This document shows positions 31,747 to 62,390 of a stretch of 64,000 nucleotides of DNA, piece by piece; position 1 is the first letter of the stretch; each line of letters begins with the position of its first letter. A model generated the notes under the pieces. It was not told the DNA's origin, ran no database searches, and saw only the letters and a program-made list of their open reading frames with translations. The stretch comes from Chlorokybus atmophyticus (taxonomy: Eukaryota; Plantae; Mesostigma and Chlorokybus algae). The translations under genes and the position numbers were made by a program. The stretch is taken from the NCBI GenBank assembly GCA_009103225.1, contig RHPI01003369.1, forward strand, positions 1,640,017 to 1,704,016, given 5' to 3'.

Positions 31747-31752
<6 letters not shown>

Positions 31753-31790
<38 letters not shown>

Positions 31791-31796
31791 GAGAGA
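31753..31796. repeat. (GA)n microsatellite
   Basis: About 22 GA units with one interruption, just upstream of the lyase ATG. Confidence 0.97.
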
Positions 31797-34367: not shown

Positions 34368-34879
34368 TGTAAAGGAATTCATTCGGTTACCACAAATCGA
34401 CCATAAAATCACCAAGTTTTTTGTGGTCGAGTGGCCTGTGACATTGGTCATCGGAGCTTGAGACCCGGGTTCGATTCCTGCCTTACACACGAATTTCGTG
34501 GTCGTTGTTTCTCGATCCAGTATCATCGTAAATGGTCACTTCATAAGTGCCATCATCGATGGGTTGCGACTTGCCTAATGGCAGTCGTGCCGGCGTTCAG
34601 TCGGCGCGGCAGGGCGCGACCTGCCTGTCGCGGTGCGACCTGGGGCCGGCAGCGGTACGCTATGCGCGCGGTATGAGCCTAAAATTGGCCGGTCCTTGGG
34701 AAGTGGGGCCGGTGACCGACCCTAATCAGTCCCTTGGGATAATTCCCAAGCTGATGGGAGCCAGCTGCTGAGGACGTCAGCGTTCTTAAGTGGGGGGGAA
34801 TGTAACGGCAAGGTACATTAAATTACTATAGATTGACCATAAAAGCACCAAGTCTTTTGTGGTCGAGTGGGCTGTGACA
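34368..34879 (+). mobile_element. Terminal-repeat retrotransposon in miniature (TRIM), 512 bp
   Basis: 5' LTR 34368-34443 (TGTAA...TGTGACA) and 3' LTR 34801-34879 share GACCATAAAA(T/G)CACCAAGT(T/C)TTTTGTGGTCGAGTGG(C/G)CTGTGACA. PBS-like TGGTCATCGGAGC at 34445-34457; PPT AAGTGGGGGGGAA at 34788-34800; flanks CCGCA/CCTCA (4 of 5 TSD match); no retrotransposon coding domain. Confidence 0.8.
34424..34478 (+). promoter_or_regulatory. tRNA-type (type 2) Pol III A box and B box spanning the LTR-PBS junction
   Basis: A box TGGTCGAGTGG (34424-34434), B box GGTTCGATTCC (34468-34478), 44 bp start to start as in tRNA genes. D-stem GTCG/TGAC and T-stem (C)CGGG/CCTG can pair. Confidence 0.65.
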
Positions 34880-34997
34880 CCTCACCCCCCACCTCTCACC
34901 CCTCTCCCCCTTTATACAACAGACTTCTTTATAGCATGAGTCTCAAAGGCCTTGTTATGCCGCGTTCATGCATGTGCGATATCACAATTGCTATATA

Positions 34998-35100
34998 AGG
35001 TGCTACATGCACCATGACAATACGGATCCTCACTTAGTCCTCCTTACTTACCACATAAGTAAGGAACTAAGAGTGACTTAAGCCAGTCCTTTAGACGTGA
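34998..35100 (-). repeat. Hairpin-containing ~100-bp repeat, copy 1 (inverted relative to the copies at 50978 and 52215)
   Basis: Its reverse complement matches 52215-52315 (about 9 differences over a 79-bp core, counted by eye). Contains the 10-bp stem TCCTTACTTA-ccaca-TAAGTAAGGA (35041-35065). Confidence 0.85.
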
Positions 35101-35520
35101 CAAGGGTTATACATTTTTGAGCTAAGCGTAGATTATTTACCAAGGTAACGCAAGTTCCTGTAGTAGATGTTGTATGACGTTTTGCAATGTATAATGTGTG
35201 TTGTGGATGTCGTTTCATATATCTTGCGTTGTTGCAAATAGTGTAAACATTATCAACATGTTATCATGTAGATTTTAGCACATTGGTTATGATAAATACC
35301 ATGCTCATTTGAGGCAAACTCTCGTGCAAAATTGCAGTGACATCTTTTTTTTAACCCATTCTTGGCCTGTTTTTACAACTTTGAAGCACCCAAGCCACTT
35401 GCAAAAAGTGTCCCCGGATTGTAACGCGGGGCTTGGCCGACTAGGCCATGGTAACAAAACACGCTACCATGAGAGGTTGTGTATTGCTTATTAATGCTTC
35501 ATAAGCCCTTCTTAGCCTAT

Positions 35521-35670
35521 TCCACATTAACCGGCATTACACGGATCTTGCAACACGCCTCCAGGGGATTCTTTCTTCGACGTAGCGTGCGACAGGGTTG
35601 CCCTCTCGCCCTTGCTCTTGTTGTCATTGCTATAAAGGCTCTCCGCTGTATGATTGAACCCCATCTGAAT
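35521..35670 (+). pseudogene. Non-LTR (L1/Tx1-like) reverse transcriptase relic
   Basis: GFFLRRSVRQGCPLALALVVIAIKALRCMI resembles the LINE RT motif F.l.RgVRQGCPLSPlLF.laiE.L; no other RT motifs remain. Confidence 0.6.
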
Positions 35671-35723
35671 TGCATTGGCCTTCGCCTCATAAATGCCTTC
35701 CCACCACATCGATTGACGTCAAA

Positions 35724-36416
35724 GGACCATGAATGGTCCGTACCTCTGGACCGGGATTTTCCCCTGCTAAGTGAAATTGGTGGACCATATATGGTCGGAC
35801 TGTCAATGACAGTCAGACCATGCATGGTCCAAACCTCACGTGAACGGTCCCATATTTTTTTGGGGTCGCACCATGTATGGTGACCTGTTTGTATGAGTTT
35901 GCAAGGACCATGTATGGTGCAATGCCCCCTGGCGCAGAAGACCAGGCATGGTTTGTTACTTCCACATGTCTGGTGATCGACAGTCGCACCATGCACGGTC
36001 CATGAATACGGACCGGAAGTCTTTGTTTTAACTGACATATTTCAGACCATGCATGGTGCGCTGCCCTCCTGGCTCAGTGGACCATTTATGGTGCCAGTCT
36101 GATCGACATTCGCACCATGCACGGTCCATGGATACGGACTTTGTTGTGCATATGTGGTCCACAAGCGGTACCATGCATGGTCCTAACAGACAACGCACCA
36201 TACATGGTCTGATTGACAGTCGCACCATGCATGGTCTATCATAATGTCACATCCATTGAAGCCATGCATGGTCCACAAGCGGCACCATGTCTGGTCCTAA
36301 CAGACAACGCACCACATGGTCTGATTGACAGTCGCACCATGCATGGTCTGTCATGATGTCACAGCCATTGAATCCATGCATGGTCTTAGCATTGGTGCCT
36401 GCACCGTGCCCGGTGC
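35724..36416. repeat. Array of about 18 palindromic (g)ACCATGCATGGT(c) units with variable spacers
   Basis: Copies at about 35724, 35783, 35816, 35869, 35907, 35941, 35988, 36046, 36081, 36114, 36170, 36197, 36224, 36261, 36284, 36311, 36336, 36373, 36401. Includes a ~113-bp tandem duplication (about 36156-36268 and 36269-36380). Confidence 0.92.
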
Positions 36417-36779
36417 ATACAATCGGACACGCATGCAATTCACAGAAATGTTGTAATGGACTGTTAAACGACAGCCCATCAGTGTCAATCCAGTGAGACT
36501 GTAGCTACAGTCTCCTACATGCACTTCAAGCTGCGGTTACAGGAGGTAACAGGAGCAGCTAACAACATCAGTCTCTTGTGTTGCCAGCACCTTCGCCTGG
36601 AAGCCAGACTTGTGCTCTCCCTGGTTGATTCAGCCCCAATGTGAAGACACCCGCGACAGCCTTGCTCAACATCATCTCTTGCAAACACTCAGCGAGTGCT
36701 TGTTAAGCTCTGCACAACAAATGTACTGTCACGTGCTTACACAAACAGTAACTTGACCATAGCACAGGAAACCACCCAC

Positions 36780-38988
36780 CTAGGATGACGAGGGCTGTCG
36801 CGTCCACTGCCTCTTAGGTCGGAATGGCTTTCTCTTCTTTGCCTCGCTCAAAAGCCCTGCATTGTACCAAATCATCACTCTTGAAAACCAGCAAAGGACT
36901 GTCGTTAACTTGCTGCAGTGAAGTATGCATACCTGGTAGTTTGCGATTGGATCCCCACTCGCACCCTCCTTCAACATCTTTGTTGGACACCAACCACTTT
37001 TTCCTGGCAGCAAAGCTGACAATGGCTCTCAAGATCAGCTCGTCTGGCACACGCTCCATTCGGTCGGGGTCCTTGAATGCCAGCTGGTGACCATTGTGGA
37101 ACAGCGTGTGCTCGATGTGGTGGTAGTACTCATACATGTCTATTGCCTCCTCTCTGGTGGGGGCGTTGGGCTTGGTGTTACACACGATCCCCGCTGCAGT
37201 TCGCAAGTCCATGGCGGCGGCTTCTTCATCTTCACAGTCAGAGATCGCCCCAGCAACCTGCCTAGGACCCAGAGTGGTCAGTGCAGTCCATTGGCGACTG
37301 TCAACACCATTGACAGTCTGCAGTGCGTTAATGACTGTCAAGAACTGCAACATGTAATGCACTTTGCGGCTGTCAAGGCGTGATCAATGGCTGCATTGGC
37401 GACTGTTCATCATGTGACAGCAGCCTAACAACAGCCCTTATTAACCTCTGTGTCTGTGCTGTGCCTGGCTGCGGGCGTATGCAGCCGGTCCTTGATGCAA
37501 CCCGGCACCGCAATGCGCTCATTGTTAGCACATGCCTCACAGGGGCAGATGCCTCCGCTGGCCAAGCACATCATGGGCCACTCCATCTCCCTGCCCTGCA
37601 TGTTGTTGTGTTTAACACAAGAAATGCTCATACACTACACCATACAGTCACAGCAGGAGCATGTGCATATCCACAGCAAGCAATGTACCTCCAGAGTACG
37701 CCCACCATGGCAGCTGCTTGTCGGCGTGCCATAGAGAAAATGCCTTTCTTTCACATGTAGTTGAACGGCAAGGTTGCCATCCTCACTTCTCATTGCCATG
37801 CAGTGGTTAACAGAGACTAGATACGTGCGCATTGGTTGGTCTGGCTCGCATACGGAATCGATGGTGGCGACGCCAACAACTATTGCGTTGTTGCAAATGT
37901 CGAACACCTGATCTTTAGCAAATCCGTTCGCACCCCTGTCGTGACACGCAGAGTAGCATTCAGAGTAGCAGGCACCATGTGTTAAGCCAGTATGCATGGA
38001 GGCAGCAGCTCAGCAAAACAGTACAATAGGACCGACAATCGACCGACAGCACCATGGTTGCTTACCTCTCTTTTAGCCAAGTGGCCCGGTACTGAGCGTT
38101 TGTGAGAGGAAGAGCGGTTAAAGGCGCAAGCATGACCACCTGCTGGTTGGCCCTCATGTCCCTCCCCAGACAAAATGTCATGCCCCAGCCAGCTCCAGCT
38201 TGAGCAGCGCGGCTGCCTTGTGCAGCTTCTCTGTCGCTGGCACGCCTTTGCTTCTTGGCCTCATTGCGTTCTTGGACGCTCTTCCCGGTACCACTGCCGC
38301 GCTTCGCGCCAACGGAGTACTGCAGCACCAGTACATGCTGCTTGATTTGTGCTGCAACACAAGCAGATAAGAGTACAGCAAAGTACCAACGGCAAGGACT
38401 GTCAACGGCAAGACAGCTCCAATACAGCATTTTCAGCTGTTGGAAGATGGCATCTAGCAGAAGACAGCCTCAAATACAGCATATCGCAACTGGTCAATGA
38501 ATCAACAAGCACAAACACAGCAACCAGGGCAAGGACTGTCAACGGCAAGACAGCTCAGCAGACAGTGAGTGAACTGAAAGCTGAACGACATGCTTGAAAG
38601 CTCACTTCAACACAGCTGAATTCAAGTTTCTGTCAAACATCAGATGTCACCAAGAAAGCAGCTCACCTTTTGTCCACGTGAGCGCGTGGTTTGCGTCAAA
38701 GACCAGTGGAAGTGACTGCTGCAAGACCGCCTCGCATACTTCGTCGAGCTCTTGCCGGTGCATGGCATTCATCTTGAAGTCCTTGCCCTTCATACCTTGA
38801 GGTAGTGGCCACTTGCTTAGCATCTCCTTCTTCAGCTTCTCCAGGTTGACCATCAGCGTAATGCGCATATGCTTGTACTCCTCCTTCATCAAGAACTGCT
38901 GGCCTGTCACCTGGCCCAGCAAATGGTTGCCCTTGGCCCTGAAGCAATCAGCTGCAGCAGGCAGTTGGCTGCCCTCCCCAATAGCCAT
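36780..38988 (-). CDS. Orphan multi-exon gene of unknown function (5' end not resolved)
   Basis: At least 5 exons join in phase with GT-AG sites: MAIGEGSQL...HALTWTK / AQIKQHVL...TWLKER / GANGFAKDQVF...GRTLE / GREMEWPMMCLASGGICPCEAC...DTE / VAGAISD...GSNRKLP. No recognisable domain. Confidence 0.55.
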
Positions 38989-39390
38989 AATGTCAGCTGA
39001 ACAGCCTGAACAAGCAACCGAACTTAGTGCACAGACAGTGACTCAGCGCACAATCAACAAGGCATGCAAGCTTCAAAGCAAAACACCTTTCAGGTAAGCG
39101 CTGACAGCTCAAGCAGCAAACCACAAACGACTAGTGCAATTTTCAAGCAACACACAACCAGGGCGCATGCAAACTCGCAAGCGAACTCACTACTCACTCA
39201 CTAGGACTGTCAAGTCCTATTGTGTTCCATATGGACAGTCGCACGAGCCGCACAAGCATTGTGATCGCCGCACAAGCCGCAATTGTGCAGTGCTAAATGC
39301 AGTGCGACACAGTCAATGGAACTCACAAAGCTTGCGACGCGGCTGTCAATCCCTAGACTCACCTTATATCTGAGGGTTGTCATTTATTGT

Positions 39391-39419
39391 CGTCGAATCG
39401 ACGCCACGTCGAATCGACG
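39391..39419. repeat. Two tandem 13-bp palindromes CGTCGA-A-TCGACG
   Basis: Copies at 39391-39403 and 39407-39419, between the two divergent island genes. Confidence 0.85.
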
Positions 39420-39639
39420 CCAAACGCACTGCTAGCAACAAATTGCGTAGAATTTACAAGGCGGCTGTCAAGGGTTAGCAGTGTTAGGGCTAGGGACTCA
39501 CCAACTTGGCGGCTGTCATTGATGGGACATCATAGATTGGACGGGAGGTTGGCGGCGTACATAGCCGTTGCATGGTCTCGCTAGTATAGTTTGCTATTGT
39601 TGTGGTTGTGGTGGTTGTGGTTGTGGTTATGGGTGTAGC

Positions 39640-40447
39640 TCAGGGCGCAGGGTGAAGCGAGGAGAGGTGTGCGGAGCTGTGAGGAGTTGTACAAGACAGT
39701 CGCTAGGAGAAGGATTGCCAGGCAGTTGGACATCATGGAACGAAGGCGGGCGTCCACAGGGGCGCCGTTTATTTGGGGCTGCCCGTTCTGCATGTGCAAT
39801 GTGCAAGCTGGTCACCGTGATGCAAGGGGTCAACCAACTGGGGGAGAGACCAAGCCCACCAAAATCGGACAGCACTTCAACACGCAGGTGTGCCGATGCG
39901 TGCGCATGACCAACAACCGGGGCGGTAGGGAGGACTAGGATGTGTGCAAGGCTATGGGGCTTCAATACCAGCAAGCCATCAAGGTAAGAACGTTCAACAA
40001 TCAAGATTGTTTACGACATGCATAGGTTGTCAATGCTCTGTGCTAAGGCGCATCGCGCATCGCATTGACAGTCGCTGCTGGGATCCTGTGCATGTCACTT
40101 GCTATGCATGATGTTGTTTTGTTCTATCAGCCTAGTTATCAACTTACATTTGCGTGACATGTCCCATTGCACGAGAAACTCACCAGCAGCGTATTGCAGA
40201 AGGATCAATTCCCGGCCCACCCTCACCCACATGTCGCGGTGCTGAAGTACTACAAAATGGCAGAAGTCATGGCCATCCCAGGATGGGTGAGTTAATGCAT
40301 TTGTACACCAATTATCGCGGCATTCTTACTTACCCAAGGTTACAGACGCAAGAAATGTGGGACGAAGCGGGACGGCTGTCAAGGCAGTATATCTTTTGGC
40401 CTCGCAATACGCAGTTGGAGGTGGAAGAGGAGCAAGCGGAGCAGGCG

Positions 40448-40483
<36 letters not shown>

Positions 40484-43400
40484 GAGCCGGAAGGAAGCGA
40501 GGAGGCAGACTCGGAGGAAACTGCAGATGTCTCAACAAGTCCATCATTGCGTAAATCCTCCGCACAGCAACGCGGCAAAGGACCTGCGGTGGATCTCAAA
40601 GAAGAGTTCCGTGCAGCTCTTCAAAAGATGCAGAGGTTTGAAGTGAAACGCTACAGTTCCACGGGCACCACACAGCCACCCAACCTGTCGGACGACATCT
40701 TGAGGGTAAGCACATGTCTTGAATTACCCCCCCCNNNNNNNNNNNNNNNNNNNNNNNNNNNNNNNNNNNNNNNNNNNNNNNNNNNNNNNNNNNNNNNNNN
40801 NNNNNNNNNNNNNNNNNNNNNNNNNNNNNNNNNNNNNNNNNNNNNNNNNNNNNNNNNNNNNNNNNNNNNNNNNNNNNNNNNNNNNNNNNNNNNNNNNNNN
40901 NNNNNNNNNNNNNNNNNNNNNNNNNNNNNNNNNNNNNNNNNNNNNNNNNNNNNNNNNNNNNNNNNNNNNNNNNNNNNNNNNNNNNNNNNNNNNNNNNNNN
41001 NNNNNNNNNNNNNNNNNNNNNNNNNNNNNNNNNNNNNNNNNNNNNNNNNNNNNNNNNNNNNNNNNNNNNNNNNNNNNNNNNNNNNNNNNNNNNNNNNNNN
41101 NNNNNNNNNNNNNNNNNNNNNNNNNNNNNNNNNNNNNNNNNNNNNNNNNNNNNNNNNNNNNNNNNNNNNNNNNNNNNNNNNNNNNNNNNNNNNNNNNNNN
41201 NNNNNNNNNNNNNNNNNNNNNNNNNNNNNNNNNNNNNNNNNNNNNNNNNNNNNNNNNNNNNNNNNNNNNNNNNNNNNNNNNNNNNNNNNNNNNNNNNNNN
41301 NNNNNNNNNNNNNNNNNNNNNNNNNNNNNNNNNNNNNNNNNNNNNNNNNNNNNNNNNNNNNNNNNNNNNNNNNNNNNNNNNNNNNNNNNNNNNNNNNNNN
41401 NNNNNNNNNNNNNNNNNNNNNNNNNNNNNNNNNNNNNNNNNNNNNNNNNNNNNNNNNNNNNNNNNNNNNNNNNNNNNNNNNNNNNNNNNNNNNNNNNNNN
41501 NNNNNNNNNNNNNNNNNNNNNNNNNNNNNNNNNNNNNNNNNNNNNNNNNNNNNNNNNNNNNNNNNNNNNNNNNNNNNNNNNNNNNNNNNNNNNNNNNNNN
41601 NNNNNNNNNNNNNNNNNNNNNNNNNNNNNNNNNNNNNNNNNNNNNNNNNNNNNNNNNNNNNNNNNNNNNNNNNNNNNNNNNNNNNTTATCGATGGCCACC
41701 CCCGCACTGGCAATGTGGCAGCTTACATCAATTCCGTACACGGGCAACAACGTGAGCCCAACGCCATGCTCTGGTCGGACTTCGATGACGCTGGCAAGCC
41801 AGCTGTCACTGTGTATGCGATCAAGGACATACAGGCAGGAGAGGAGCTACTACTGGACTATGACCCTTTCCGTGGGCCACCTGATGGGCAGACAGACAAA
41901 GTAAGTGGTTGCATTGTTGCATGCATGCTTGCTTGTTAGGCAGCTGTCAATGCCAGACTGTCAATGCAGACTGTCAATCTGTTACAGGACACTAACTGGC
42001 CTTTTGGTTGCAGACCCAACTGTGGAGAATGGAAGATGTTGCGCAGAAGTTTGTATATGGCTGGGGGCTGGCCATGGAGGACGCTATGTGGCTGGTAACG
42101 AGCAAGGCGCCAAGGGAGCCGGGCGAGAGTGCCAGGGCGTATTCCAGGCGGTTGCTCACCCGTGCTGTCAAGCTGAAGCGCACCAGATCAATGGTAAGTT
42201 ATGTATTTTTGCAAAGGCAATGCATGTACATTGACAGTCCCTTTTTATAGTCTGTTGTTGGCATGCAAATCGCCGTGCAGTTCGTGAACTGCACCACGGA
42301 TTGCATGCCAACAACCAATAGAGTATGCACGTCTGTCAACAGATAGACCCTGAAGCTCATGTTCAGCGCCAAATATCTGTTCACTTCTGTAAAGCTGTGC
42401 ATGACGCTGCCTATGAAATGAAAGAGGCAGCAAACAGACAAGTAGACGACCTCAAAGAAGTCATTAGAGACTTAGAGCTACGGATTACACAAGAGAATGT
42501 GCTCAGGGTACGTTGCCATGTAGGCCACCAAACATTCCACACAGAGCCCTAACTTGTTACCTTTGTTTGCAGGAGAAAATGGCCGCCATGTACACCAAGA
42601 CAGTCGAGGCGCACCAAGCTCAGACACTTGGCCTGGCTGCCAGAGAGAAAGCTCTTACCCGGCAGGCTGTATCGCTTGACTGCAGCAGGAGGAAAGGGAA
42701 AAGCATTGGGAGAAGAAGATAACAGCTGTTCTTCAAAAAGGCTGCAAGAAGCTCCTCTCCGAGGTGATGCAAGACGCGCTGCGTGTCATTGTCAACGAGC
42801 AGATCGAGCACGAGGAGAAGAAGGAGGAGCAGGACAAGGAGGCTGATGCAGCACGTGCATTGGAAGCCATGACGGAGCCTTCCACTGCGGCTCAGGCGGT
42901 GCCTGCTAGGCCTGAACCTGTGAACCCCATGAGTGATATAGAGATTGATTCGCATCCCCTGTGGACTTGGCTCGAGCGCGCCAACATGCGTCCACCCACC
43001 ACTGGTCCAAGGCCCATGCGGTCTGACAGGCCAAAGGACAGTCCCCCTCACAGTCCCACTCACAACCCCCATGGCCCACCGTCCCCTCCCCCTCACAATC
43101 CCCATGGCCCACCGGCACCTCCCCCTGGTACTAGTATGCCAGCTGGCACCAGTACGCAAGCCCCAGACCCTCCACGTGTTGACAGTCCCAAGCTACCGAT
43201 AACAGCAGGTCCCCCTCCCCTGACTCCACCACCGTCCAAACCGTCCAAAAAGCAGCGCTAGGACCTGCCAGCAGCCACAGAAGGAACTCCACAATCAACC
43301 ACGCCATCAACTAGTCAGTCCACCCCTACCGGAACCTTGCAGCTATCAACCTTGCAGCTATCAGGCTCTTCGTTCAGAGAACGTCTGCGAAAAGTTGTCG

Positions 43401-44532
43401 CAGGTCCGACACCATCAGCGAATACGCCAACACCAAGTACGCCACAGGGCCGGCCGCCTCTACCTCTGCATAATGTCACCCGGGACCTGACTCCCGGCGC
43501 TGAGCCCGAGGCGCTTGTGAAGATACGAGAAGCCGATAGCGTGCACGCCGCCGACCTCGACGCTGCATTGCAAGCCGTGCAAAACCTTGCATCTGCAGCA
43601 AAGGTACAGTTTATACACACATGGGCTGTCAACAAGGCTTGCAGCATACTGTTTGCGCCCGCATGGGCACAAACTGTTGACGACGACCATTGAGGACTGT
43701 GAACAGTATGTGCCCATGCGGGCGCAAACTGTTGACAGTCCTCAATGGTCGTCGACGACTGTCACAGAGTTTGATGCATGTTGACAATGCTCTGCTAGCT
43801 AGTGTGTGGACTCACTTCTTGTTTCGTCCAACGAGCGGGCACAGACCAGTCACACGGTCTTGCAAGAGTCCATGCGCAACTTCAATGAGATGCGCAAAAA
43901 GCAACTTGAACGTGCTCTCAACAATCTGGAGGAGTCGCACCGGCAGCGTAGGCTGCTGGCTGATAACTTCACCCGTGAAGACAAACTGCTGCGGCAGCAG
44001 CTGCATGAGCTGCAGCAAAGGGAGTTCGCAGCAAAATCCCTTGCTGAGGAGCTGCAGCAAAGGGAGTTGGCGGCGGTATACAATGCTGAGGAGCTGCGGC
44101 GGCAAAGGGAGTTGGCAGCAAAATCCAATGCTGAGGAGGTTGACAGTCTGCACCGGCAGTTGCTTCAGGCACAGCAGGAGGTTGCAGCATCAAACGCATC
44201 GATGACCAACATGGCGGCAGACGCAGAGAACCGTTGGCGCTCCACCGATGCGGTGCTTCACGAGTACCATCAGCGCAACGCCAGTGTTGGAACGGGTGCA
44301 GCAGCTGGAGTCCACCTCAAGTGCGGCGGCCAATGTTGGTGAAGAGCTGCACCGTACAAGGGAACAGCTACTCAAGCTGCAGCAGCAAGCGGTACAACCT
44401 GTTCCTGAGGCTGTCAACGCTGAGACTGTCAACGCACTGACAGAGAGAGCTGAGCGAGCAGAGAAGCAGTTGGAAGAGGTGCGAGCCCGCAATCGAGAGC
44501 TGGAGCAACAGTCGGGGCACGCGCAGTGTTGA
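39640..44532 (+). pseudogene. Long decayed multi-exon gene: Cys/His-rich N-terminus, acidic/polyQ, SET domain, helical region, Pro-rich region, coiled coil; truncated by the copia LTR
   Basis: After the gap: IDGHPRTGNVAAYINSVHGQQREPNAM...VTVYAIKDIQAGEELLLDY (SET C-terminal motifs GN.a.yINh..PN and I.aGEEL..dY). In-frame TAG at 39936 and 43259, frameshifts near 42680 and 44270. The frame otherwise continues through several GT-AG introns; the terminal TGA is supplied by the LTR (TGT TGA). Confidence 0.7.
40735..41685. other. Assembly gap (951 N)
   Basis: Run of N; hides the N-terminal part of the SET domain. Confidence 1.
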
Positions 44533-44966
44533 AGGACTAGCATGTACATGTAGCTGAGGCAAGCATGGATACACACGGACAGAGCTACCGCCACCAGAGC
44601 ATACACAAGTCACATCACATTCATCTATTACAAGTTGTCCGCTGGTTCTTATACCAGCCAGTTACACACACGTCTACGTTTGCAAGCACTGCGTAAGTTA
44701 TACTCAGCCCTTTGACGCGCTCTAAGCTGCGTTGTCTTCCTTACAACTAGAGCTTTCCAACGAGCTCTTACACGCCTCATATGAGTAAGTATACGCGGAG
44801 ATACGAAGCAGTTAGTAAGGCTCCTGTCTGGAGTCCGGAGTCTGGTCCGACGATGCCATCTTGCTAAGTCCGGACCTAATGCTCGTCCTTACGACCTTCT
44901 ACTCCTGTGTGGAGGGTCGATGCTGATCGTATGTAGGAATGACTCTCAACACTCCCACGCGAGCAG

Positions 44967-45689
44967 CTAGAGCCCAGGGTCTGCAGAGGATGCGGTGAAG
45001 CCAAGTGCCTCCAGCTCCTTGGTGAGCTTGATGTGCCACATACGCGGCGCCTGTCGCAGCCCGTACAGTGCCTTGATCAGCTTGCACGCTGTGCCTCTCT
45101 CCCCTTCTTCATATCCAGGTGGTTGCTCGATGAAGATCTCCTCCTCCAGCTCTCCGTAGAGGAAGGCAGTCTTTACATCCAGGTAATGTAGCTCTAGGTC
45201 TTCAGCAGCAACCATAGCTAGCAGTGCACGGAAGGTGGTATGCTTACTTGCAGGTGCAAACACTTCGTTGAAGTCCACACCTTCCTGCTGCAAGAAGCCC
45301 TTTGCCACCAGTCTTGCCTTGTAGCGCTCAATGTTGCCCTGACCATCACGCTTCACCTTGAAGACCCATTTCACTGGAATGGTCTTCACTCCTTGCGGTA
45401 ACTGCTCCAGTGACCAAGTGTTGTTGGCATGGAGTGACGCAATCTCCTCGTCCATAGCACGCTGCCATTGCTCCGCATCTGGTGCTAACAATGCCTCCTC
45501 GTAGGTGCTTGGCTCCTCATTCTGCACACTGGCGACGTGTGCCTTGTGTAAGAAGTCAGGTGCCTTTCTCTCCCTCACTGGGTATCTCCGAGCTGCGTGC
45601 TCCTGCTGTTGGTACGGCCCCTCTTGGCCTGCTACAGCTGAGTCCTGCTCACCCTTGTTGTTGATGATGGCCTTGCCTGTAGCCTCCAC
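44967..45689 (-). pseudogene. Copia reverse transcriptase, N-terminal half only
   Basis: EEPSTYEEAL...WQRAMDEEIASL...WVFKVK...YKARLVAKGF...DVKTAFLYG...LIKALYGLRQAPRMW; the YVDD motif and RNase H are absent before the PPT. Confidence 0.93.
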
Positions 45690-47845
45690 TGTTTCAAGAA
45701 GCCTGCTTCTGTTTGTGATAATCCCTCGTGGAAAACCACCTCTCTGCTCACGATGATCTTCTGAGTGTCCTCGAGCAAGATCCTGTAAGCCTTGGAACCC
45801 GGTTCATAGCCAACGAAGATGCCCTTCTTGCTGACCGGCTCCAGCTTGTGCCTGAGCTGTTTAGGCACTAGTGCATATGCCGTGCATCCAAACACACGCA
45901 TACCACTCACATCTGGTGTGGCTCCATAGAAGTGCTCCCACGGAGTCTTCTGCTCTGAGCTCACCGGAGACCTGTTGCGGATGTAGTTGGCAGTGAGTAC
46001 CGCCTCCTTCCACAAACTGTCTTCCATCTTTGTGTCGTTGAGCATGGCTCGAACACGCTCCAAGAGTGTCCTGTTGAGGCGTTCAGCTGCTCCATTCTGC
46101 TGCGGGGTGTAGGGTGCCGTTGTCTCGTGGCGTATGCCCTTGCTGGCGAAGAACTCCTTCAACTCCTTGTTGATGTACTCCCCTCCTCGGTCACTCCTCA
46201 TTGCCTTTAACTTGTTGCCAGACTGCGTCTCGAACAAGGCCACAACTGTGCGCACGGCTCCAGCAACTTCTGACTTGAGCGTCAATGGAGAGATGATTGA
46301 CAGCTTGCTGTAGTCGTCAAGGAATGTAGCAAAGTACCTGGCCCCTCCCTTCGCCACAATGCGCATAGGGCCACAGACATCCATGTGCACAAGCTCGCAA
46401 GGATGCTGACTGCTAGAAGAGGATGATGGGAATGGCATAGCATGCTGCTTTGCAACCAGGCATGGTTCACAAAGTGCACCTGATGCATTCTTGAGTTCTT
46501 CTGTGCTGAGATGGATGCCCTTGACCATCTTTTCAGCGACAAGGCGAGTGAGGTTGACGTAGCTGAAATGCCCGAACCTTCGATGCCACAATGTTGGCGA
46601 CTCCTTGTCCTTCACCACCACGGCTTGACTGTCAATGTCCTTAGGGTGCTGCTCCACGTGGTAGAGCCCTCCCGGATAAGTGATTCCAACCATGTCCACG
46701 ACCCCATCAAGGTTAAATGTGCAGCCACCCTTCCGAAATAGGATCTCCGCGCCTAAGCGCTCCGCAACCCTCACAGAGAATAGACTCGCAACAGCCTTAG
46801 GAACATGCAGGACGTTGCGTAACAACACCTCGCGTAGTGTGTTACCAACCTTGCACTGGAGTCGTACGTTGCCAACTCCCTCAGCCACCAGTACTTCGCC
46901 ACCGAAGCCCGCCACCTTGATTGTGGACGTCAGCTTCCTGTAGCCCTCCATCACCTCCTTGTTTGGTGTGAGATGACGATCGCAGCCAGAGTCCACCACC
47001 CAGAAAGCTGTGCCCGCCCTCGAACTGGATGCAGTGAAGGCGACATGTTTCTCCTTGTGTTGGTGCTCGTTGCCGCTGTTGCTGGTGCTTGCTCTAGGTT
47101 GCCCCTGTTGTTTCTTCCTACAGTCCTTCACAATGTGCCCCTTCCAACCACACCAGTGGCATGTGAGGTCTTTGTGACGAGGATTGCCTGGCTTGTTGCC
47201 CTTGTACTTCTCTTCATGGTTGCTCTTCTTTGCGTGCTTGCCGGTGTAGAAGGCGACGGCATCCGCTTGCTCGTCCTTCTTCACAACCTTCTGCTCCACG
47301 GTGAGCAGCTTCGGTAGCACATCGTCCACCGTCAACTCCGATGATGACGTCTCCAGCAGGGTTGCGACGACCTCGTACTCTGCTGGTAGCCCTGCAACAA
47401 TGGCCAGCACTACCTCCGTCTCCCCCATGTTGTGGCCGACGTTGATGAGGTCCGCCCACAGCTCTCTCGCGCGCGCAATATACTTTGTGATGGGTTCTGC
47501 TGTCTCCTGCCCGAGTGCGCTGAGCTGCTTGCGTAGATGCAACTTTCTGGCATTGTTCTTGGCTCTGAAAACGGCTGATAGCTTTTCCCAAGCTTGTCTA
47601 CCATCTTCACATGCAGTGAGCATGGGAAAGTGATGCGGTTTGCTGTTCAACACAAGCAAAGAGTGTGCTTCTGCTGAATGCTCTGACCACACAGTGTTCG
47701 CTCCTGGTGTTGGTGGTGGTGCCTTCGGATCAACGTACTTCCACACCTTCTTGTGGATGAGCAAGGCCTTCATCTCCACGCACCATGTGTTGTAGTTGTC
47801 GGTGTCCAGCTTTGCAATCTGCCCCTTGTCGTAGGTCGCCTCCAT
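45632..47845 (-). CDS. Copia gag-protease-integrase ORF
   Basis: Uninterrupted ORF from MEATYDKG through the integrase. The RT part (44967-45689) is in a different frame. Confidence 0.92.
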   Translation of the reverse strand: MEATYDKGQIAKLDTDNYNTWCVEMKALLIHKKVWKYVDPKAPPPTPGANTVWSEHSAEAHSLLVLNSKPHHFPMLTACEDGRQAWEKLSAVFRAKNNARKLHLRKQLSALGQETAEPITKYIARARELWADLINVGHNMGETEVVLAIVAGLPAEYEVVATLLETSSSELTVDDVLPKLLTVEQKVVKKDEQADAVAFYTGKHAKKSNHEEKYKGNKPGNPRHKDLTCHWCGWKGHIVKDCRKKQQGQPRASTSNSGNEHQHKEKHVAFTASSSRAGTAFWVVDSGCDRHLTPNKEVMEGYRKLTSTIKVAGFGGEVLVAEGVGNVRLQCKVGNTLREVLLRNVLHVPKAVASLFSVRVAERLGAEILFRKGGCTFNLDGVVDMVGITYPGGLYHVEQHPKDIDSQAVVVKDKESPTLWHRRFGHFSYVNLTRLVAEKMVKGIHLSTEELKNASGALCEPCLVAKQHAMPFPSSSSSSQHPCELVHMDVCGPMRIVAKGGARYFATFLDDYSKLSIISPLTLKSEVAGAVRTVVALFETQSGNKLKAMRSDRGGEYINKELKEFFASKGIRHETTAPYTPQQNGAAERLNRTLLERVRAMLNDTKMEDSLWKEAVLTANYIRNRSPVSSEQKTPWEHFYGATPDVSGMRVFGCTAYALVPKQLRHKLEPVSKKGIFVGYEPGSKAYRILLEDTQKIIVSREVVFHEGLSQTEAGFLKQWRLQARPSSTTRVSRTQL

Positions 47846-48643
47846 CTTGTCGCTCCTGCCTTCCTTGCAGTTGACACCCAAGGCTCTGCTACTAACAAGC
47901 TACCGTAGTGTAGAACTACTAATGCACACAAGCTAGTCTCACACTCTTCAAGCGTAGTGTGGGCCCATAACCTGTTGAAGGACTAGCATGCACATGTAGC
48001 TGAGGCAAGCATAGACAGACAGAGCTACCGCCACCAAAGCATACACAAGTCACATCACATTCATCTATTACAAGTTGTCCGCTGGTTCTTATACCAGCCA
48101 TTCACACACACGTCTACGTTTGCAAGCACTGCGTAAGCTATACTCAGCCCTTTGACGCGCTCTAAGCTGCGTTGTCTTCCTTACAACCAAAGCTTTTCAA
48201 CAAGCTCTTACACGCCTCATATGAGTAAGTATACGCGGAGATACCAAGCAGTTAGTAAGGCTCTAGTCTGGAGTCCGGAGTCTGGTCCGACGATGCCATC
48301 TTGATAAGTCCGGACTCAGTGCTCGTCCTTACGACCTTCTACTCCTGTGTGGAGGGTCGATGCTGATCGTATGTAGGAATGACTCTCAACAGATCCTGGG
48401 GTACATCTAAACCTTCTTGGTGTACATAATCTTTGTATAGTACAAGCGTGTTAATGCTTAAGATGAACATCAGTGTTTTTATGCCTTCTTTCAGTAATGA
48501 CCACTCACAACAAGCACAAATGAGCACATGAGCACAATTAACAGCCGCATGGACTGTAAGTGACACGTATTGCCTTGTTGCAGGCTGTCAACCACTCACA
48601 ACATGAAACCACACATGAGCACAATTGACAGCCGCAACGACAG

Positions 48644-50700
<2,057 letters not shown>

Positions 50701-50977
50701 CCACTGCTCCCTCAGCTCACGCTGCTTTTACTCAACTCATGGACAGATTACTGGGTATTGCCTAACCTCTAACTGTTGTTGGTATGTGCAAGCACTGCAC
50801 GCTGATACACAATGTCAGAGTTGGTTGTCACTCTCACGATTTGCACTACTTTCATGCATGGTGTTGCAAGTGTTGAAAGGAATTTGATCACCATGTCTCC
50901 GTTTCGTGCAAGACATGTGTCTCATTATGAGAGTCTTTTGCAACGTGGCATTGCAATACATGTGGGAGGAATGACCG

Positions 50978-51107
50978 ACGCACCCATAGGGCTAGCCAAA
51001 GTCAGTCTCTGTCCCTTATTTATGTGAGAAGTACGGACCAAGTGAGGATTCCGCTCACACAAGCATGTGTAGTGCTTGTTGGGTGTGCTCATGCGGTCTA
51101 CTAGTAG
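50978..51107 (+). repeat. Hairpin repeat family, copy 2 (more diverged)
   Basis: GGGCTAGCCAAAGTCA...GGACCAAGTGAGGATTCCGC...ATGCGGTC...CTAGTAG aligns with 52215-52356 in direct orientation. Confidence 0.75.
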
Positions 51108-51112
51108 ATGAG

Positions 51113-51142
51113 CATAGGCTCAAGAGTACTCTTGAGCCTATG
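51113..51142. repeat. 30-bp perfect palindrome
   Basis: CATAGGCTCAAGAGT|ACTCTTGAGCCTATG. Confidence 0.95.
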
Positions 51143-52214
51143 AGGCCTTGGATATGATGAACTACTACTGTGATACAAAGGCAATGCAATGTGCTCGCCA
51201 CTTATAATGAGTGGCGAGCACATTGCTGATCATAGCCAATAGACATCATGTGATATACAGGGACATACGTGTGCATATGCGCGCATGCATATGTATGATG
51301 TCTGTAATTGTTAAGGCTGATGTGACAAGCCAAGGATGTTCACAATATCCGAGGCTGATGGGCGTGATCAGCCAGAGGCATAACGATGGTTCTGAGGCTG
51401 ATGTATGACATTCCCAATGCTAGAACGAGGTCAATGCAGCCACGACAAGGCAAGCCTTTGACATGGTTGCAGTTGTTCTAGGTCGGAGAGCAATAAAGGG
51501 GTATGTAAATGGTCCCAACAAGTGTTGAAACAGCTCGGCATGTGCATACTCGACTCTTGTGTGCGGGGTGCCTAGTTTAATTGTTCAAGGGCTCCCTGCA
51601 ATCTCATGTGGGGTGTGGTATCTGTGGCAGCTCTGCACGCGTAGAGCGTGCATGTGTATGTGTGGGAGCTGAGTAGGGGGGGGGTTGGTGCTTTCCTCAC
51701 CTTCCTGAGTGTGGTGCTGAGACTTCCCCTGCAAGACGCTACACTGTTGGTGCTGAGACTCCCAACTGTAAGTCATAGCTTGTAAATAAGCTTGCAAAGC
51801 CGTCCAACAAGCAAGTAGTATTCATCACATTGTGAACAGCGTCATGATAACCAAGTTCAACATTGCAAAGCGGAACGCATTATTTTCATGTATACAACAC
51901 ACAAACCACCTTGCTATGTACTTTTTGTTTTAATAACTATTTAAACTATTTAAACCATGCATTTGATATCGTGTATTATACATTACATAGTAGTACATCC
52001 AGTCGCTGCTGCACCTGCCCATTGCTGTTGCATTGCACAGCATTGCACGTATGCTAGTGCAGTAGGTGTAGTAGTGGTGGTTAAGTAAAAAGCTATACCC
52101 CTCGGTCAAATTTGCGCTGTGTATCTTGCTATCTATGTGCCCTGGTTGCTTGTGTTTCTGCCTTTGCATGTACTATTATGCTGTATACTTTAATACTTTT
52201 TCATGAAATTACTA

Positions 52215-52356
52215 TCACGCCCAAAGGGCTGGCGAAAGTCACTCTTAGTTCCTTACTTATGTGGTAAGTAAGAGGGACCAAGTGAGGATTCCGCATGCCA
52301 TGGTGTGTAGCACTTGGTATGTGTGCTTATGCGGTCAGTCCTTGTCTACTTAGTAG
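52215..52356 (+). repeat. Hairpin repeat family, copy 3
   Basis: Inverted match to 34998-35100 and direct match to 50978-51107; stem CTTACTTA-tgtgg-TAAGTAAG. Confidence 0.85.
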
Positions 52357-53092: not shown

Positions 53093-53228
53093 TGAGTGCG
53101 TGTTGCTGCATTTTGCTGCGTCTTGCTGCATACACGTCTGCACTTGCGCGTGTGAGTGCGTGTAGCTGCATTTTGCTGCGTCTTGCTGCATACACGTCTG
53201 CACTTGCGCGTGTGACTGCGTGTTGCTG
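53093..53228 (+). repeat. 60-bp tandem repeat (about 2.3 copies) in the gag leader
   Basis: TGAGTGCGTGTTGCTGCATTTTGCTGCGTCTTGCTGCATACACGTCTGCACTTGCGCGTG repeated with about 2 substitutions. Confidence 0.93.
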
Positions 53229-53274
53229 AATCCACGCTCATTACGTGCTTGTGCACGAGCAAAAACCATCGATA

Positions 53275-54272
53275 ATGGCTGACGGAGCTGCCAACGTTGC
53301 CTTGTCGCTGTCGCGGCTCAAGTTACGGAGCTGCAAAGCCAGGTCCAGGCCATGATGGCGGCCAACACGTCCATAAAGGAGCAGCACGACCAGCAGCTAG
53401 CCAAGTTGGTTGCTGCAAACGCCCATAAGATGATGCCTAGCCTCGAATTTTTCTCCGGCACCCATGACGGGAAAGGCAAGGATCTTGGCGTGGCCGTGCA
53501 TAATTGGCTATTCGGCTGTAAGCGTGTGTTGCATGCCGCAGAGGTGTTGCCTATGCATGAGGCCAAAGCGGTGTCGCTTTTGGCATCCTACTTGCGCGGC
53601 AGTGCTGCCCGCATGTGGGAGGGGGCTTCTCCACGTTTAGAGGCCGCTGACAAAGTTGTCACGAGCTTGGATGTGTTCGAGAGTGCTATGTTGCAGGCCT
53701 ACGGGGGTGTGAACCCGTCGCAGAAGGCGCGTGACAAGCTACGTCGCTTGAAAGTCAAGCCCAACCAGTCCATCGAGGACTTTACTGTCTACTTCGAGTC
53801 CGTGTGTGCCGAAGTTGGCCCCGACAAGCCTCTGTCTAAGGCAAAGAAAATGGACAAGTATTGGGCCGCCTTGCCGGAGGATACGGCAAAGCAATCAACC
53901 TTCAAGGAGAGACTTGAGTCCTTCACGCATGCCAACTGCGACTTGATGAAGCGCACGGCCGTTCAGAATGACAACAGCCAGCGCATGATCGACCAGGCCA
54001 AGAAGTTGACGATTGTCAACAATAACCAGCCCTCCTCGTCCACTCCCTCGGTGGGAGGTGGCAGTGGCAACAGCCGCAAGCGCGGCCGCCCTGACGGTAG
54101 AGGCTAGCAGCCCGCCCAGCTGATCAACAAGAAGCGTGCACTCAGCATCCCGGGTGTCACCGCGGAGCGCAAGGGCGCTCGCTTCAAGGCCGGCTTGTAC
54201 CTCAGGTGTGGGGAGAAAGGCCACCGTGTGGCGAACTGCCCCAAACCCTCCTCCGACAAGCCTGTAGCATAG
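53275..54272 (+). pseudogene. Ty3/gypsy-like gag (capsid plus degenerate zinc knuckle), no pol
   Basis: FSGTHDGKG...VHNWL...AVSLLASYLRGSAARMW...FESAMLQAYG...ARDKLRRLKVKPNQSIEDFTVYFE (retrotransposon gag pattern). Frameshift near 53310, in-frame TAG at 54105, then YLRCGEKGHRVANC (CCHC with the first Cys changed to Tyr), stop at 54270-54272. Confidence 0.8.
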
Positions 54273-55819: not shown

Positions 55820-58402
55820 ATGGGGTGGTGGTCGTTGCTGCCGGTGCTTGCGATTGCAACGCTAGCATTGTCGTTGCTGTCGCCATGCGCTTGTCAGCGC
55901 CTTAATGATGGTGGCAAACCTGGTGCAGTGCTGAGCGGTGGGTTGAGAGCTATTGCCTCAAACCCTAGAAGCATAGCGCTCCTGCCTAATGCTTGCTTGA
56001 GGAAAACACGACATACTCACAATTCTGTGACAACCACTGCGAGCGTTGAACAAGCGCAGGAAGATTACATTCGCATCATGACAGGTGAGAGACCATGCTT
56101 AATGCTCACACTGGAGCTCAGTTGCATGCACCTAAGTGAAGCACACAAACAGAGCCTGAGCAGTTAATACACTTATGGTATGTGATGTGCAGTTGTGTAT
56201 AGCAAAAGCGCGTACAGTTGACGTGTGTGAGCACACAGTTGCGAGTGCGTGCGCTGCTTCGTGCATGCAAGCCTGCGCACTCACACAGTGTTGTTCTGCC
56301 TCTCTCTCACCAGCTGCCAAAGGGGGCTGCAAGGCTGCTGAGTTGGCGAACCAGTTGAAGCAGATTGGCGGCGAGCATGTCAGGCACCATGCTCGCGTGG
56401 TGTCAGCCATTGTGCCAATGTCCGCCATCAACCAGGCATGCTGCTCATTGACGTATACATGCGAGCACACACGCGTGCACATGCACACACTTGCACATGC
56501 ATGAAAAAGTACACGTGCACGCGCAAGTGCACATGCGCGCACTGGCACACATTGACAACCGCACGCATGCGCGCACGCACATGGACATGCGCTTACGCAC
56601 ATGTCCGCTTGTACACAAACACATGCACACCCACAAGCACTGTGCATACCACGAGGTCAAAACTGACTCCTTCTCTCCCCCTCAGCTCAACGACTTGCCA
56701 TGCTTGCACCTCGCACGCGAAGAGCCAGTCACCACACACCAGGTACTTGATTGGATCATGTTGAGTTCACCACATCGCTCTTCACATGCTTGTTGGTCTT
56801 CCACCACATCACTCCTACAGGTGAACTTCCAAGGGGCACGCTCGATGTCGGTGAGCCGGGGTCTGCAGCAGTTGTCAATATCGGGCGCTAGGAAAGGACG
56901 CGAGGTGCGTGTGGGCATCCTGTCCGACAGCTTCAACTCCCTCGGCGGGTACTGTGACGACATCCTATCCAACGCCCTCCCTGGCGGCATCCACGTGCTG
57001 TCGGACCTCGTCCCAGGCAAGGTACACATGCATGCTTGGTCAGATGTGTGCGCGCGTGCGTGCGTGGGTACGACCCTCTGTGTGCACTCTCGCACGCAAG
57101 AGCATGTGTGCGTGTGCGCGCGCGCGCGCAAACGTGTGCATGTGCGTGTACATGTGCGTGTAAGTGCGTGGGTGTGAGTGTGTGTATACATGCGTGCATG
57201 CGTGCCTGCATGCAAGCGTGTTCCAGCAATGGGTCGCTTGCACACAGGACAGCGTTTCGGGCACGGACGAGGGCAGGGCGATGGCGCAGGTGGTGTACTC
57301 TGTGGCTCCGGGGGCGAGGCTGTCCTTTGCGACGGGGTTGAGGGGCCAGGCGGACTTTGCCAACAATATTCTCGCCCTAGCGCGCCCTTTCAAAGACGAC
57401 ATTGTTGATGATAACAATGACAACGAGGATGTGGATGTGGATGATTACCACGCCTGCCATGTGCTTGTTGACGATGTCAAGTACCATGGCGAGCCCATGT
57501 TCCAGGTTCATCAATGAACCAGTACCTGTGTTGCACTTGGTAGTGTGTGAGTGGCAGGCTGAGTCTTGTTGTGCATGCGTGCGTGTCATGCAGAATGGCA
57601 TTGTCGCTCAAGCAGTAAACGATGCCCGCAAACGATACAATGTTGCATACTTCAGCAGCGCTGGCAACCAGGGCTTCAACTCTTACCGCTCAGGTAAGAC
57701 ATATATGTCATAAGTGACAAATGCACATGCATGTACACATGCGCACCCGCGCGCATGTGCGTGCGCATGTGTGCGCCAGTAGGCATGTGCGTGCACATGC
57801 ATGCGTACGCAGGTGCATGTGTGTATGTAAGCGTGCAAGTATGCTTAGGTCACATGTACGCCCTGCACATAGTCATACGCACATGGGGCGTTTTCGTGTG
57901 TCTTCATGTGTACACACATACAAGCGCACACAGACGCACATTCACATACTAGCCCACCGCCATGCGTGCGCACATGTCAACTCGTTTTTCATGCCACTGA
58001 CAGATTTTGTGCCAAGTGGTGTAACGGGCAAGGCGGGCATGTTACACGCCTTCGGAAGCGCATGGAACGACACTATGCCAGTAGTCTACCAACAGTACAG
58101 CTTCGCTCCCGGCTTCACAACATTGGTGTTCCAGTGGGATGAGCCGTGGTTTTCAGTCAGTGGTAGGTTCGGAGCCGCGTGCAAAAGCGACATAGATATC
58201 CGCGTGAGCTTTGACCCAAGCGCGCCTGTCCAGTGGCTCGACGGGCTCGATGTTAACACTGGTAAGGACGCTATCGAATTTCTTCAAGTTCTCAACAATG
58301 ACGTCACTGCCCATGTCGTCGGCAACATCTCCATTGAGTGGGTCAGCGGGCCTCAACCAGGCGCAATCAAGTGAGTAAAGCTGCGTGTACGTGTGTGGGT
58401 GC

Positions 58403-58489
<87 letters not shown>

Positions 58490-60242: not shown

Positions 60243-62390
60243 TCATATGGACTTTGGCAGCCCTGTTCTCCTATCAAGCAAAGCTGTTGCCTCATCTGCA
60301 GTAATGGATGGGCCTTCACCAACACGCGTGGATATCAAGTACCTAAGAGCGCCTAGATGCCTTTCACGTGGCTGCCACTTGTCTTGGACAGCCTCTGCTT
60401 GCTGTAACAATGCGTCGTCTCCAACATACCTGTTATTCACATGACTCCAAATTCAGCACACGCAACTTGACTGAAACTGCTGTACACAACTCACTTACTT
60501 GGACACAGTTGTGCCTTCCGAAGGAGGGAATGTTTCAAGCACCCGATGCAGCAGCTCCGGCATGTCCTGCTCTAACGCAAAGAGGACTGCGTTGGGCCCG
60601 GCATCAAACGTGTATATGGCCTGTCAAGACACAAACATCAGTCACACTATCGCTCGTGGGATAAGTGGTTATGCTGCTCTAGCTGAGCCAGTGAGTAAGT
60701 GCACACAGATGTGGGCACTAGCAACAACATGCACAGCTCACCGTAATTCGGTGCTTGTCTTTGTTCAATTGTTCCACTAGCTCAATCACCCTGCGGACCA
60801 GGTGCTTCGGTCATTGCCGAGAATGAAAGCGAGAAACATCGGTGCACATGCTTTCAAGCGCATGTGTGTGCGTATGGCTGCGCGCATACAGGCACACGTG
60901 GGTGCCCCAGCACGGAGGGGGGGGGGGGGGGGNTGCGTGTACGTGAAAGCACGCAAACGTGAGCGTATGTCTGTGTGTGTCAGCGCGCACGTGCACAAAC
61001 GGTCACGCTTGCGTGCGAGAACACCCACATGCGTCAATGCGCACGTTGACGCATTTGTGCATTGATGCAGGGTGTCTGGGTGCATGCATGTACGTGTAGA
61101 GAGAAAGCAAGCACCTGAGCGCATGCGTGCAGGTGGGTACACATGTGTGTGGGTGTACAAGTATGGGCGCATGCGGGTGCGTGCGTGCGTATGTGCATGC
61201 TTTGAGTGAAGTGTCAGCGGACAACGCACTGACTGTCTGGAGGTGTCGTTGAGGTAGAAGATGGGAGGGGCGGTGTCTAGACAAGTTGCATGAAACTGGT
61301 TGCTGTCTGCCGCTGTTAACGACCCAAAGCTGGTAAAGTCACGGTTCTGAATGGCCTGCTCCATTGCTGCCATGCGCTCCGGCACAATGTGCTGCCCAAG
61401 AACAACGAACAACATATTCAAACTCGTCACTGACATGCTGTATGCACTATTCTACAACTGTGTGTTGCCATGTCATGCATGGACACATACATAGACCTTG
61501 CAATGCTGCCATGCATGCATTCGGGCGTGTGTGTAAGCAAGCCAGATGTACCCATGCACCTCGCACATGGACAAGCATGTATGCTTTTGCAAGTACCCAT
61601 AACAACAACATGCTAAAAGTTTGGCGCGAAGCAGCACACATACCTTTGCACGGTGTGCGAGCAACGGGCTGGTCTGCACGGATCTGCGCATGCCATCTGA
61701 GCTGCTGGTGTCTTTGCGGCGGTCGCTGACGACGCAGATGAGGACTCGAAGGTCAGGCCAGTGGTGCTCATCGGCCACCTGCACAGCAATGCTGTCGCCG
61801 CCGTCGGCGGCAACGCCCACATCCCAGCGGACAAAACCCCCATACAGGCTGCGGCACGCACTGCCTGAACCCATGCGTGCAATGGCTGAGAGGGGGAGGC
61901 GGTGGTTTTGGTCGTTGCTGTCGTTGTTGTGGTCGCCAGCAACACCCAGGAGCTGCGCCACGCAGTAAACCAGGCCTGCCAGGCCGGCCGCAGAAGATGC
62001 CAGGCCGGCGGCAGTGGGGAAGCTGTTGGAGGAGGCCACGTGAAACTTGAGGTCAGGGCGGCCGGCTCGGGCCCGCAGGGCGTCCAGGCAGGCTCTGTGG
62101 CGGGGGTGGGCGGCCATGTCCAGCTCGCCCGACCCAGCCAGCCATATGCGGTCGCTGGAGAAGGAGGCGGAGGCGGTGGCGGACGTTGTGGCGGCCAGGC
62201 GGCCTGGGTCCAGCGTCACCGACAGCGACGAGTTCAGCGGCAGCACCAGCTTCTCATCCCGCTTGCCCCAGTACTTGATCACGGCAATGTTCGTCGGACA
62301 CCTCACCGTAACCACCTGCAGCTCCTCCTCACCCAGACCAGCGCCGCCATCCACCTCCACGACCGCCGCCGCCACCACCTCCGAGGCCAT
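60243..62390 (-). CDS. MVD: Diphosphomevalonate decarboxylase (5 exons: 62390-61644, 61391-61234, 60790-60742, about 60621-60500, about 60430-60243)
   Basis: [29 protein letters not shown]; [16 protein letters not shown]; [19 protein letters not shown]; [16 protein letters not shown]; [21 protein letters not shown]; [11 protein letters not shown]. Confidence 0.97.

Follow-up and report, generated by a model that had tools for sequence, protein, structure and literature searches.

Did the parts of a repeat-rich interval in the genome of the alga Chlorokybus atmophyticus once move together as a single transposon and, if so, where did that transposon end? The interval lies in a 64-kb stretch of contig RHPI01003369.1, here called the window; all coordinates are window positions. 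In the original prediction, two inverted ~100-bp repeats were taken as the ends of one cargo-carrying CACTA/CMC-like DNA transposon of about 17 kb. This element would enclose a palindrome array, two genes and a transposase remnant and would have been hit later by a long interspersed nuclear element (LINE) and by a copia element. The analysis presented here leads to a shorter unit. The core at ~35.72-50.69 kb (11 kb without copia) is tentatively read as the relic of one large CMC (EnSpm/CACTA) cut-and-paste transposon, truncated on the right; this is the preferred reading, its probability being put at slightly below even. One motif, evenly dense, is common to the array, both genes and the relic, which argues for a shared origin; the unit would extend over ~11 kb and not from repeat to repeat.

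The collections searched define the scope of the results. The best match of an exon of the mevalonate diphosphate decarboxylase (MVD) gene in the protein collection shows 58% identity, and Spirogloea, land plants and animals all match it at 52-58%; hence it is taken that this collection includes neither the source genome nor its close relatives. The protein and contig collections are both used here as collections without them, and this bounds every null result on copies or homologues.

The dispersed motif

The limits of the unit are given by a short motif. Exact TTGACAGTC sites number 21 in the window (0.84 expected), and every one falls inside the motif domain (Table 1). The sites follow the consensus RTTGACAGYC, with a nearly palindromic core, GAC(A/T)GTC, and inverted dyads are frequent. 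The motif could be a protein-binding site. Its density is even over the array, the orphan gene, the SET-domain gene and the transposase relic, drops in the copia element and falls off at sharp edges, which argues for one origin of these four parts. The claim that one over-represented motif is common to the array, the genes and the relic is thus sustained, the flanks having at most 0.06 sites per kb; as a mark of the whole repeat-to-repeat interval it fails, since it stops 0.6 kb (left) and 1.6 kb (right) short of the repeats. Because motif-free DNA separates the motif domain from the repeats, the unit is taken to stop short of them.

Introner-like miniature inverted-repeat transposable elements were considered as carriers of the motif and rejected: the DNA flanking individual sites is unrelated. 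In the literature, the motif string was found in primers only.

The motif also bears on an alternative in which the locus was never one element. The interval would then be a mosaic, a satellite-like array adjoining two host genes specific to the lineage and a transposase relic unrelated to them, and the motif would be a cis-regulatory or structural site. ATTGACAG and TGATTGACAG, for example, may resemble sites of TALE-homeodomain proteins (KNOX/BELL, PBX-MEIS). For some copies a coding position is plausible; the one at 50576 encodes EIDS, which is aligned to EIDN in a fern homologue. A host-gene origin would also suit the canonical splice sites of the SET-domain gene. However, an even density of 2.6-4 per kb over exons, introns and intergenic DNA, on both strands, is unlike known regulatory clusters. 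The sites extend into the body and the 3′ flank of a dead transposase gene, ~47 kb of neighbouring intron-rich genes are without them, and the ends of the motif domain coincide exactly with the cuts in the transposase open reading frame (ORF) and in the LINE ORF. The mosaic is judged unlikely, while retaining appreciable weight.

The transposase relic

The predicted CMC-type transposase remnant was recovered by remote homology. The ORFs of the relic gave no match to Pfam even at E 10, and a word-indexed protein search was also empty; an exhaustive HMMER search found 162 relatives (best E 2.6e-29, 37% identity), of which the full-length ones mostly have ~1000 residues. The named relatives are from the fern Adiantum nelumboides, the liverwort Riccia sorocarpa and the alga Klebsormidium nitens. 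Transposase_21 (tnp2) was found in 10 of 28 relatives (best 3e-6), always ~190 residues upstream of the segment homologous to the window, and DUF4218 in one relative, overlapping this segment; all of these matches are under the Pfam gathering scores (Transposase_21 cut-off, 28.6 bits). Since this domain layout is that of plant CACTA transposases, the relic is provisionally assigned to the EnSpm/CACTA (CMC) superfamily, as a member of a putative divergent branch in streptophytes. Its family would be an under-annotated streptophyte CMC lineage. The family is large in Adiantum nelumboides, where its members are mostly annotated as 'hypothetical protein' and are under the Pfam Transposase_21 thresholds.

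What survives corresponds to residues ~490-760 of the relatives. Their N-terminal ~490 residues, which hold the DDE core, have no match in the 64-kb window, and in-frame stops occupy two conserved positions, one a W and the other an R. The transposase gene is dead and truncated, and the relic cannot move. Within the relic lies a compound (GT)n(GA)n microsatellite (49440-49564), and five motif copies are clustered beside it at 49586-49661. Similar microsatellites are found at 58384-58487 and 31752-31796, in introns of the flanking genes. At the Adiantum and Klebsormidium loci of homologous transposases, no clear terminal inverted repeats were found within 10 kb.

The orphan and SET-domain genes

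One of the two intron-containing genes that had been proposed is the SET-domain gene. Its exon at 41688-41901 corresponds to the C-terminal half of Pfam SET (7.3e-8) and ends in a canonical AAG|GTAAGT donor; an acceptor site was also located. The short intron that follows contains three tandem GCAGACTGTCAAT units, which are copies of the motif. The only scaffold gap of the window (951 N, 40735-41685) would contain the N-terminal half. ELLLDY is present; NHSC is not conserved, and its position reads NSVHGQQRE. The tail is made of 42-bp coding repeats. Near-perfect hairpin palindromes with arms of 30-43 nt are found in the SET region at 42254-42315 and 43648-43762, the latter with motif dyads.

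The second gene has the orphan status that was predicted: its ORFs have no Pfam match and no homologue among 5.8 billion proteins (word-indexed search). Its gene model, introns included, is putative. A single-sequence AlphaFold 2 (AF2) model has a pLDDT of 40 and is of no use.

The presence of a SET domain raises a further alternative, in which the motif domain is an integrated virus or virus-like fragment and the motif a promoter or replication signal. Some algal viruses carry SET-domain genes, and the motif is short, dispersed and palindromic, as such a signal could be. Yet no hallmark domain was found in any ORF, the GC content is the same as in the flanks, at least one spliceosomal intron is present, and a motif-dyad scan of viral contigs gave single sites at chance level without enrichment. 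A viral origin is thus very improbable.

The left edge: LINE fragment and palindrome array

The palindrome array is present as predicted. GACCATGCATGGTC (two mismatches or fewer) has 14 sites, all at 35725-36385, against 0.34 expected in the window, and the units are organised in a higher-order repeat with a period of 112 bp (92% matches, Tandem Repeats Finder, TRF). A metagenome scan for paired ACCATGCATGGT palindromes returned 19 loci, none of which has the TTGACAGTC motif or BLAST similarity to the window.

On the left, the array is abutted by a fragment of a LINE-type reverse transcriptase (RT), a weakly supported assignment (RVT_1, E 0.17). The fragment is cut before the YADD box and stops at the edge of the array; its 3′ part is absent, and no second half was found anywhere in the window. 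A simple LINE insertion retains its 3′ end. The missing 3′ part weighs against the proposal that the LINE had inserted later into the element.

The ~100-120-bp repeats

The inverted repeats exist, and so does the third copy that had been noted near 50978. Copies A and B (52215-52313), in inverted orientation, share 86% identity over 102 nt (E 3e-27); copy C matches B at 76% over 119 nt and A at 75% over 65 nt. No fourth copy was found in the 64-kb window, and a metagenome contig scan for the repeat core gave 0 matches. The ~120-bp unit has an internal hairpin but neither terminal inverted repeats of its own nor a poly-A. The possibility that C and B are the long terminal repeats (LTRs) of a small retroelement was rejected: they are only 76% identical, and no primer-binding site follows C.

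These repeats are the basis of the alternative closest to the original prediction, a single 17.3-kb CACTA/CMC-like element with ends at 35000-35100 and 52215-52313, two cargo genes and later LINE and copia insertions. Some features fit it. A and B are truly inverted, with the identity and E value given above; within the 64 kb, all three copies are confined to the island's margins; and the divergence of the repeats (14%) exceeds that of the copia LTRs (5.6%), in agreement with the proposed order of events. The edges do not behave as termini, however. The outer ends of A and B read GTGCTACA. No CACTA occurs within 34800-36000, and the TAGTG sites of the right side are unpaired; CAC..GTG or CA..TG ends in the right arrangement are absent from the candidate edges. 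Target-site duplications at the A/B, A/C and motif-domain edges (slack of ±12 to 40 bp) are limited to 4-6-mers at chance level. The lack of CACTA/TAGTG ends and of a target-site duplication, already conceded in the prediction, is thus corroborated. Both B and C are eligible as right-hand partner of A. Since B and C still match each other for ~20 bp after the A/B alignment has stopped, the repeat unit does not end there. The repeats lie outside the motif domain, with motif-free spacers just within them on both sides, and the enclosed LINE fragment, being without its 3′ end, is unlike a simple LINE insertion. Several independent deletions would be needed, which makes more events than the history preferred below. 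The 17.3-kb element is therefore highly doubtful. The repeats are unlikely to be element termini and are read as a separate short repeat family in the flanks.

Two tRNA-like copies (34380-34500 and 34816-34880) lie just left of repeat A. They are 84-88% identical over ~60 nt and have motifs resembling box A and box B (GTGGTCGAGTGG ... GGTTCGATTCC); no tRNA was called in them by ARAGORN. They are probably heads of short interspersed nuclear elements (SINEs) or tRNA pseudogenes, and repeat debris therefore reaches beyond the proposed element. Just right of repeat B, at 53093-53231, lies a 60-bp tandem repeat (2.3 copies, 96% identical).

The copia insertion

Copia was correctly predicted as a later insertion. 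Its late arrival is indicated by its low motif density and by the divergence of its LTRs, which are 425 bp long and 94.4% identical. Pfam domains Retrotran_gag_2, Pol_BBD, gag_pre-integrs, rve and RVT_2 were found, giving gag, protease, integrase and RT in copia order. The RT ends at position 152 of 244 of the model, and RNase H is missing. No 5-bp target-site duplication was found at the element, which is flanked by CGCAG and GATCC. Its present structure probably arose by an internal deletion or by recombination of two elements.

Proposed history and its weight

If the preferred reading of the core as one CMC-type relic is followed along the minus strand, a transposase gene without its 5′ half would come first, then the SET-domain gene on the opposite strand. 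A fast-evolving orphan, on the same strand as the transposase, would follow in the position of a TnpA-type gene. CACTA elements have a DNA-binding gene of TnpA type on the transposase strand. The 700-bp palindrome array would come last, as a putative counterpart of a subterminal binding-site region.

The CMC-type element probably inserted into a LINE at ~35.70 kb; the cut in the LINE RT at this point would be the result. A single later deletion or rearrangement at ~50.69 kb, on the right, could account together for the missing DDE core, the missing right terminus and the missing other half of the LINE. Copia would then have landed between two convergent genes. That the parts were once united, what the orphan did and in which order the events took place are all proposed from the arrangement of the locus.

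Several observations weigh against this reading. Known CACTA elements have transposase-binding motifs within the subterminal few hundred bp and not over their whole length; here, TTGACAGTC is dispersed through the core. The palindrome array is found at the left end of the motif domain only, with none on the right. Neither termini nor a target-site duplication were found at the motif-domain edges, and no second copy of any part was found in the collections searched. The orphan and SET ORFs have no counterparts beside the homologous transposases at the Adiantum and Klebsormidium loci. The domain signatures that place the transposase family are all sub-threshold. The position of all three repeat copies at the margins of the island would allow some link between them and an element. 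The mosaic considered above gains from two of these points: the absence of either gene beside homologous transposases elsewhere, and the lack of copies, ends and target-site duplication.

A more specific proposal can be made, in which the ~11-kb motif domain is a copy of an undescribed streptophyte CMC-type family, characterised by SET cargo and by element-wide RTTGACAGYC dyads, perhaps bound by the orphan protein. It is improbable.

Features and gene context

The features of the locus are listed in Table 1. The window is eukaryotic nuclear DNA with a GC content of ~51%, and the interval is best read as a repeat-rich, gene-poor island amid ordinary genes. The outer blocks contain intron-split genes for NADPH-cytochrome P450 reductase (FAD_binding_1, NAD_binding_1), an Rpb1-type RNA polymerase subunit, a RecQ-like protein (RQC, HTH_40), a heparinase II/III-like protein, MVD and a class I tRNA synthetase. 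A single N is found at 60933, within the MVD gene region. Rfam and tRNA scans of the whole window were empty. At 53283-54104 (+) lies a clean ORF of 251-274 aa with a composition like that of retroelement gag and without a Pfam match; an exact look-up of this gag-like ORF (53352-54107) in the contig collection returned no record.

Table 1. Features of the locus and density of the dispersed motif. Coordinates are window positions; motif density is given in sites per kb.
Feature	Position	Strand	Motif density	Remarks
Repeat copy A	35000-35100	-		Proposed left terminal repeat; ~20-bp internal hairpin, z-score -4.9
Interval inside repeat A	34998-35699		0	
LINE-type reverse transcriptase fragment	35473-35700	+		RVT_1 model positions 102-144; RQGCPL motif
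Palindrome array	35720-36430	.	4.0	GACCATGCATGGTC units, 112-bp higher-order repeat; left edge of motif domain
Motif domain	35798-50584	.		21/21 exact TTGACAGTC sites of the window; 30/32 RTTGACAGYC sites
Orphan gene ORFs	36814-37362, 37635-37997, 38647-38988	-	2.6 (orphan region)	No relatives
SET-domain gene	40154-44520	+	2.6 (5′ part); 3.2 (3′ part)	N-terminal ORF, 951-N gap, SET exon, short intron, coiled-coil repeat tail
Ty1/copia element	44527-48391	-	0.26 (~3 around copia)	LTRs 44527-44951 and 47973-48391
CMC/EnSpm-type transposase relic	48647-50690	-	2.6	Homology 49722-50690 only; two in-frame stops
Interval inside repeat B	50701-52336		0	
Repeat copy C	50983-51098	+		Direct to B, inverted to A
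Repeat copy B	52215-52336	+		Proposed right terminal repeat; A/B alignment stops at 52313, B/C likeness to 52336
Left flank			0.06	
Right flank			0	

Significance

In its present form the locus amounts to a dead relic within a repeat island, and its practical value lies in annotation. The transposase family, known from a fern, a liverwort, Klebsormidium and this genome, could enter repeat libraries, and the SET-domain and orphan genes are to be treated as possibly transposon-associated and not as host genes. If all the parts once belonged to a single mobile element, the plant lineage would have its own counterpart of the TET/JBP-carrying fungal transposons, a DNA transposon with a chromatin-modifier gene of its own. 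A binding motif spread across the entire element would be unusual as well.

Comparison with known systems

Plant EnSpm/CACTA transposons (e.g. maize En/Spm) come closest, and a relic of such an element is the most that the locus can be called. The resemblance consists of the weak Transposase_21 (tnp2) and DUF4218 signatures in the relic's family, of a second gene of poor conservation encoded on the transposase strand, and of a short motif in direct and inverted copies with an array near one edge, reminiscent of EnSpm/CACTA subterminal repeats. CACTA elements are usually large and usually carry additional genes. Unlike EnSpm/CACTA elements, the locus is without CACTA..TAGTG ends, a 3-bp target-site duplication and a DDE core; its motif spans the whole 11 kb, its array is one-ended, and its transposase family lies under the Pfam thresholds.

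A TET/JBP dioxygenase gene is carried by fungal DNA transposons of several groups (EnSpm, Plavaka, KDZ and others) (PMC12730594). Many copies allowed complete members of these families, with 5′-CA..TG-3′ ends and target-site duplications of 2-5 bp, to be reconstructed (PMC12730594). The families belong to the wider CMC(T) group of DNA transposons and have a chromatin- or DNA-modifying gene beside the transposase; the SET-domain gene next to the relic would form a parallel to them. The present case differs in that it is one truncated locus, with another class of enzyme, in another host kingdom; the SET-domain gene is a putative cargo only.

Nested transposon islands of plants and algae are the third system to which the locus can be compared. 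As in such islands, copia, a LINE fragment, tRNA-like SINE-type repeats and short dispersed repeats lie between housekeeping genes, with a satellite-like array and a DNA-transposon relic packed in. The usual nested island differs from the locus in one respect: here, a single motif of 9-10 bp runs at even density through 11 kb and several of the parts.

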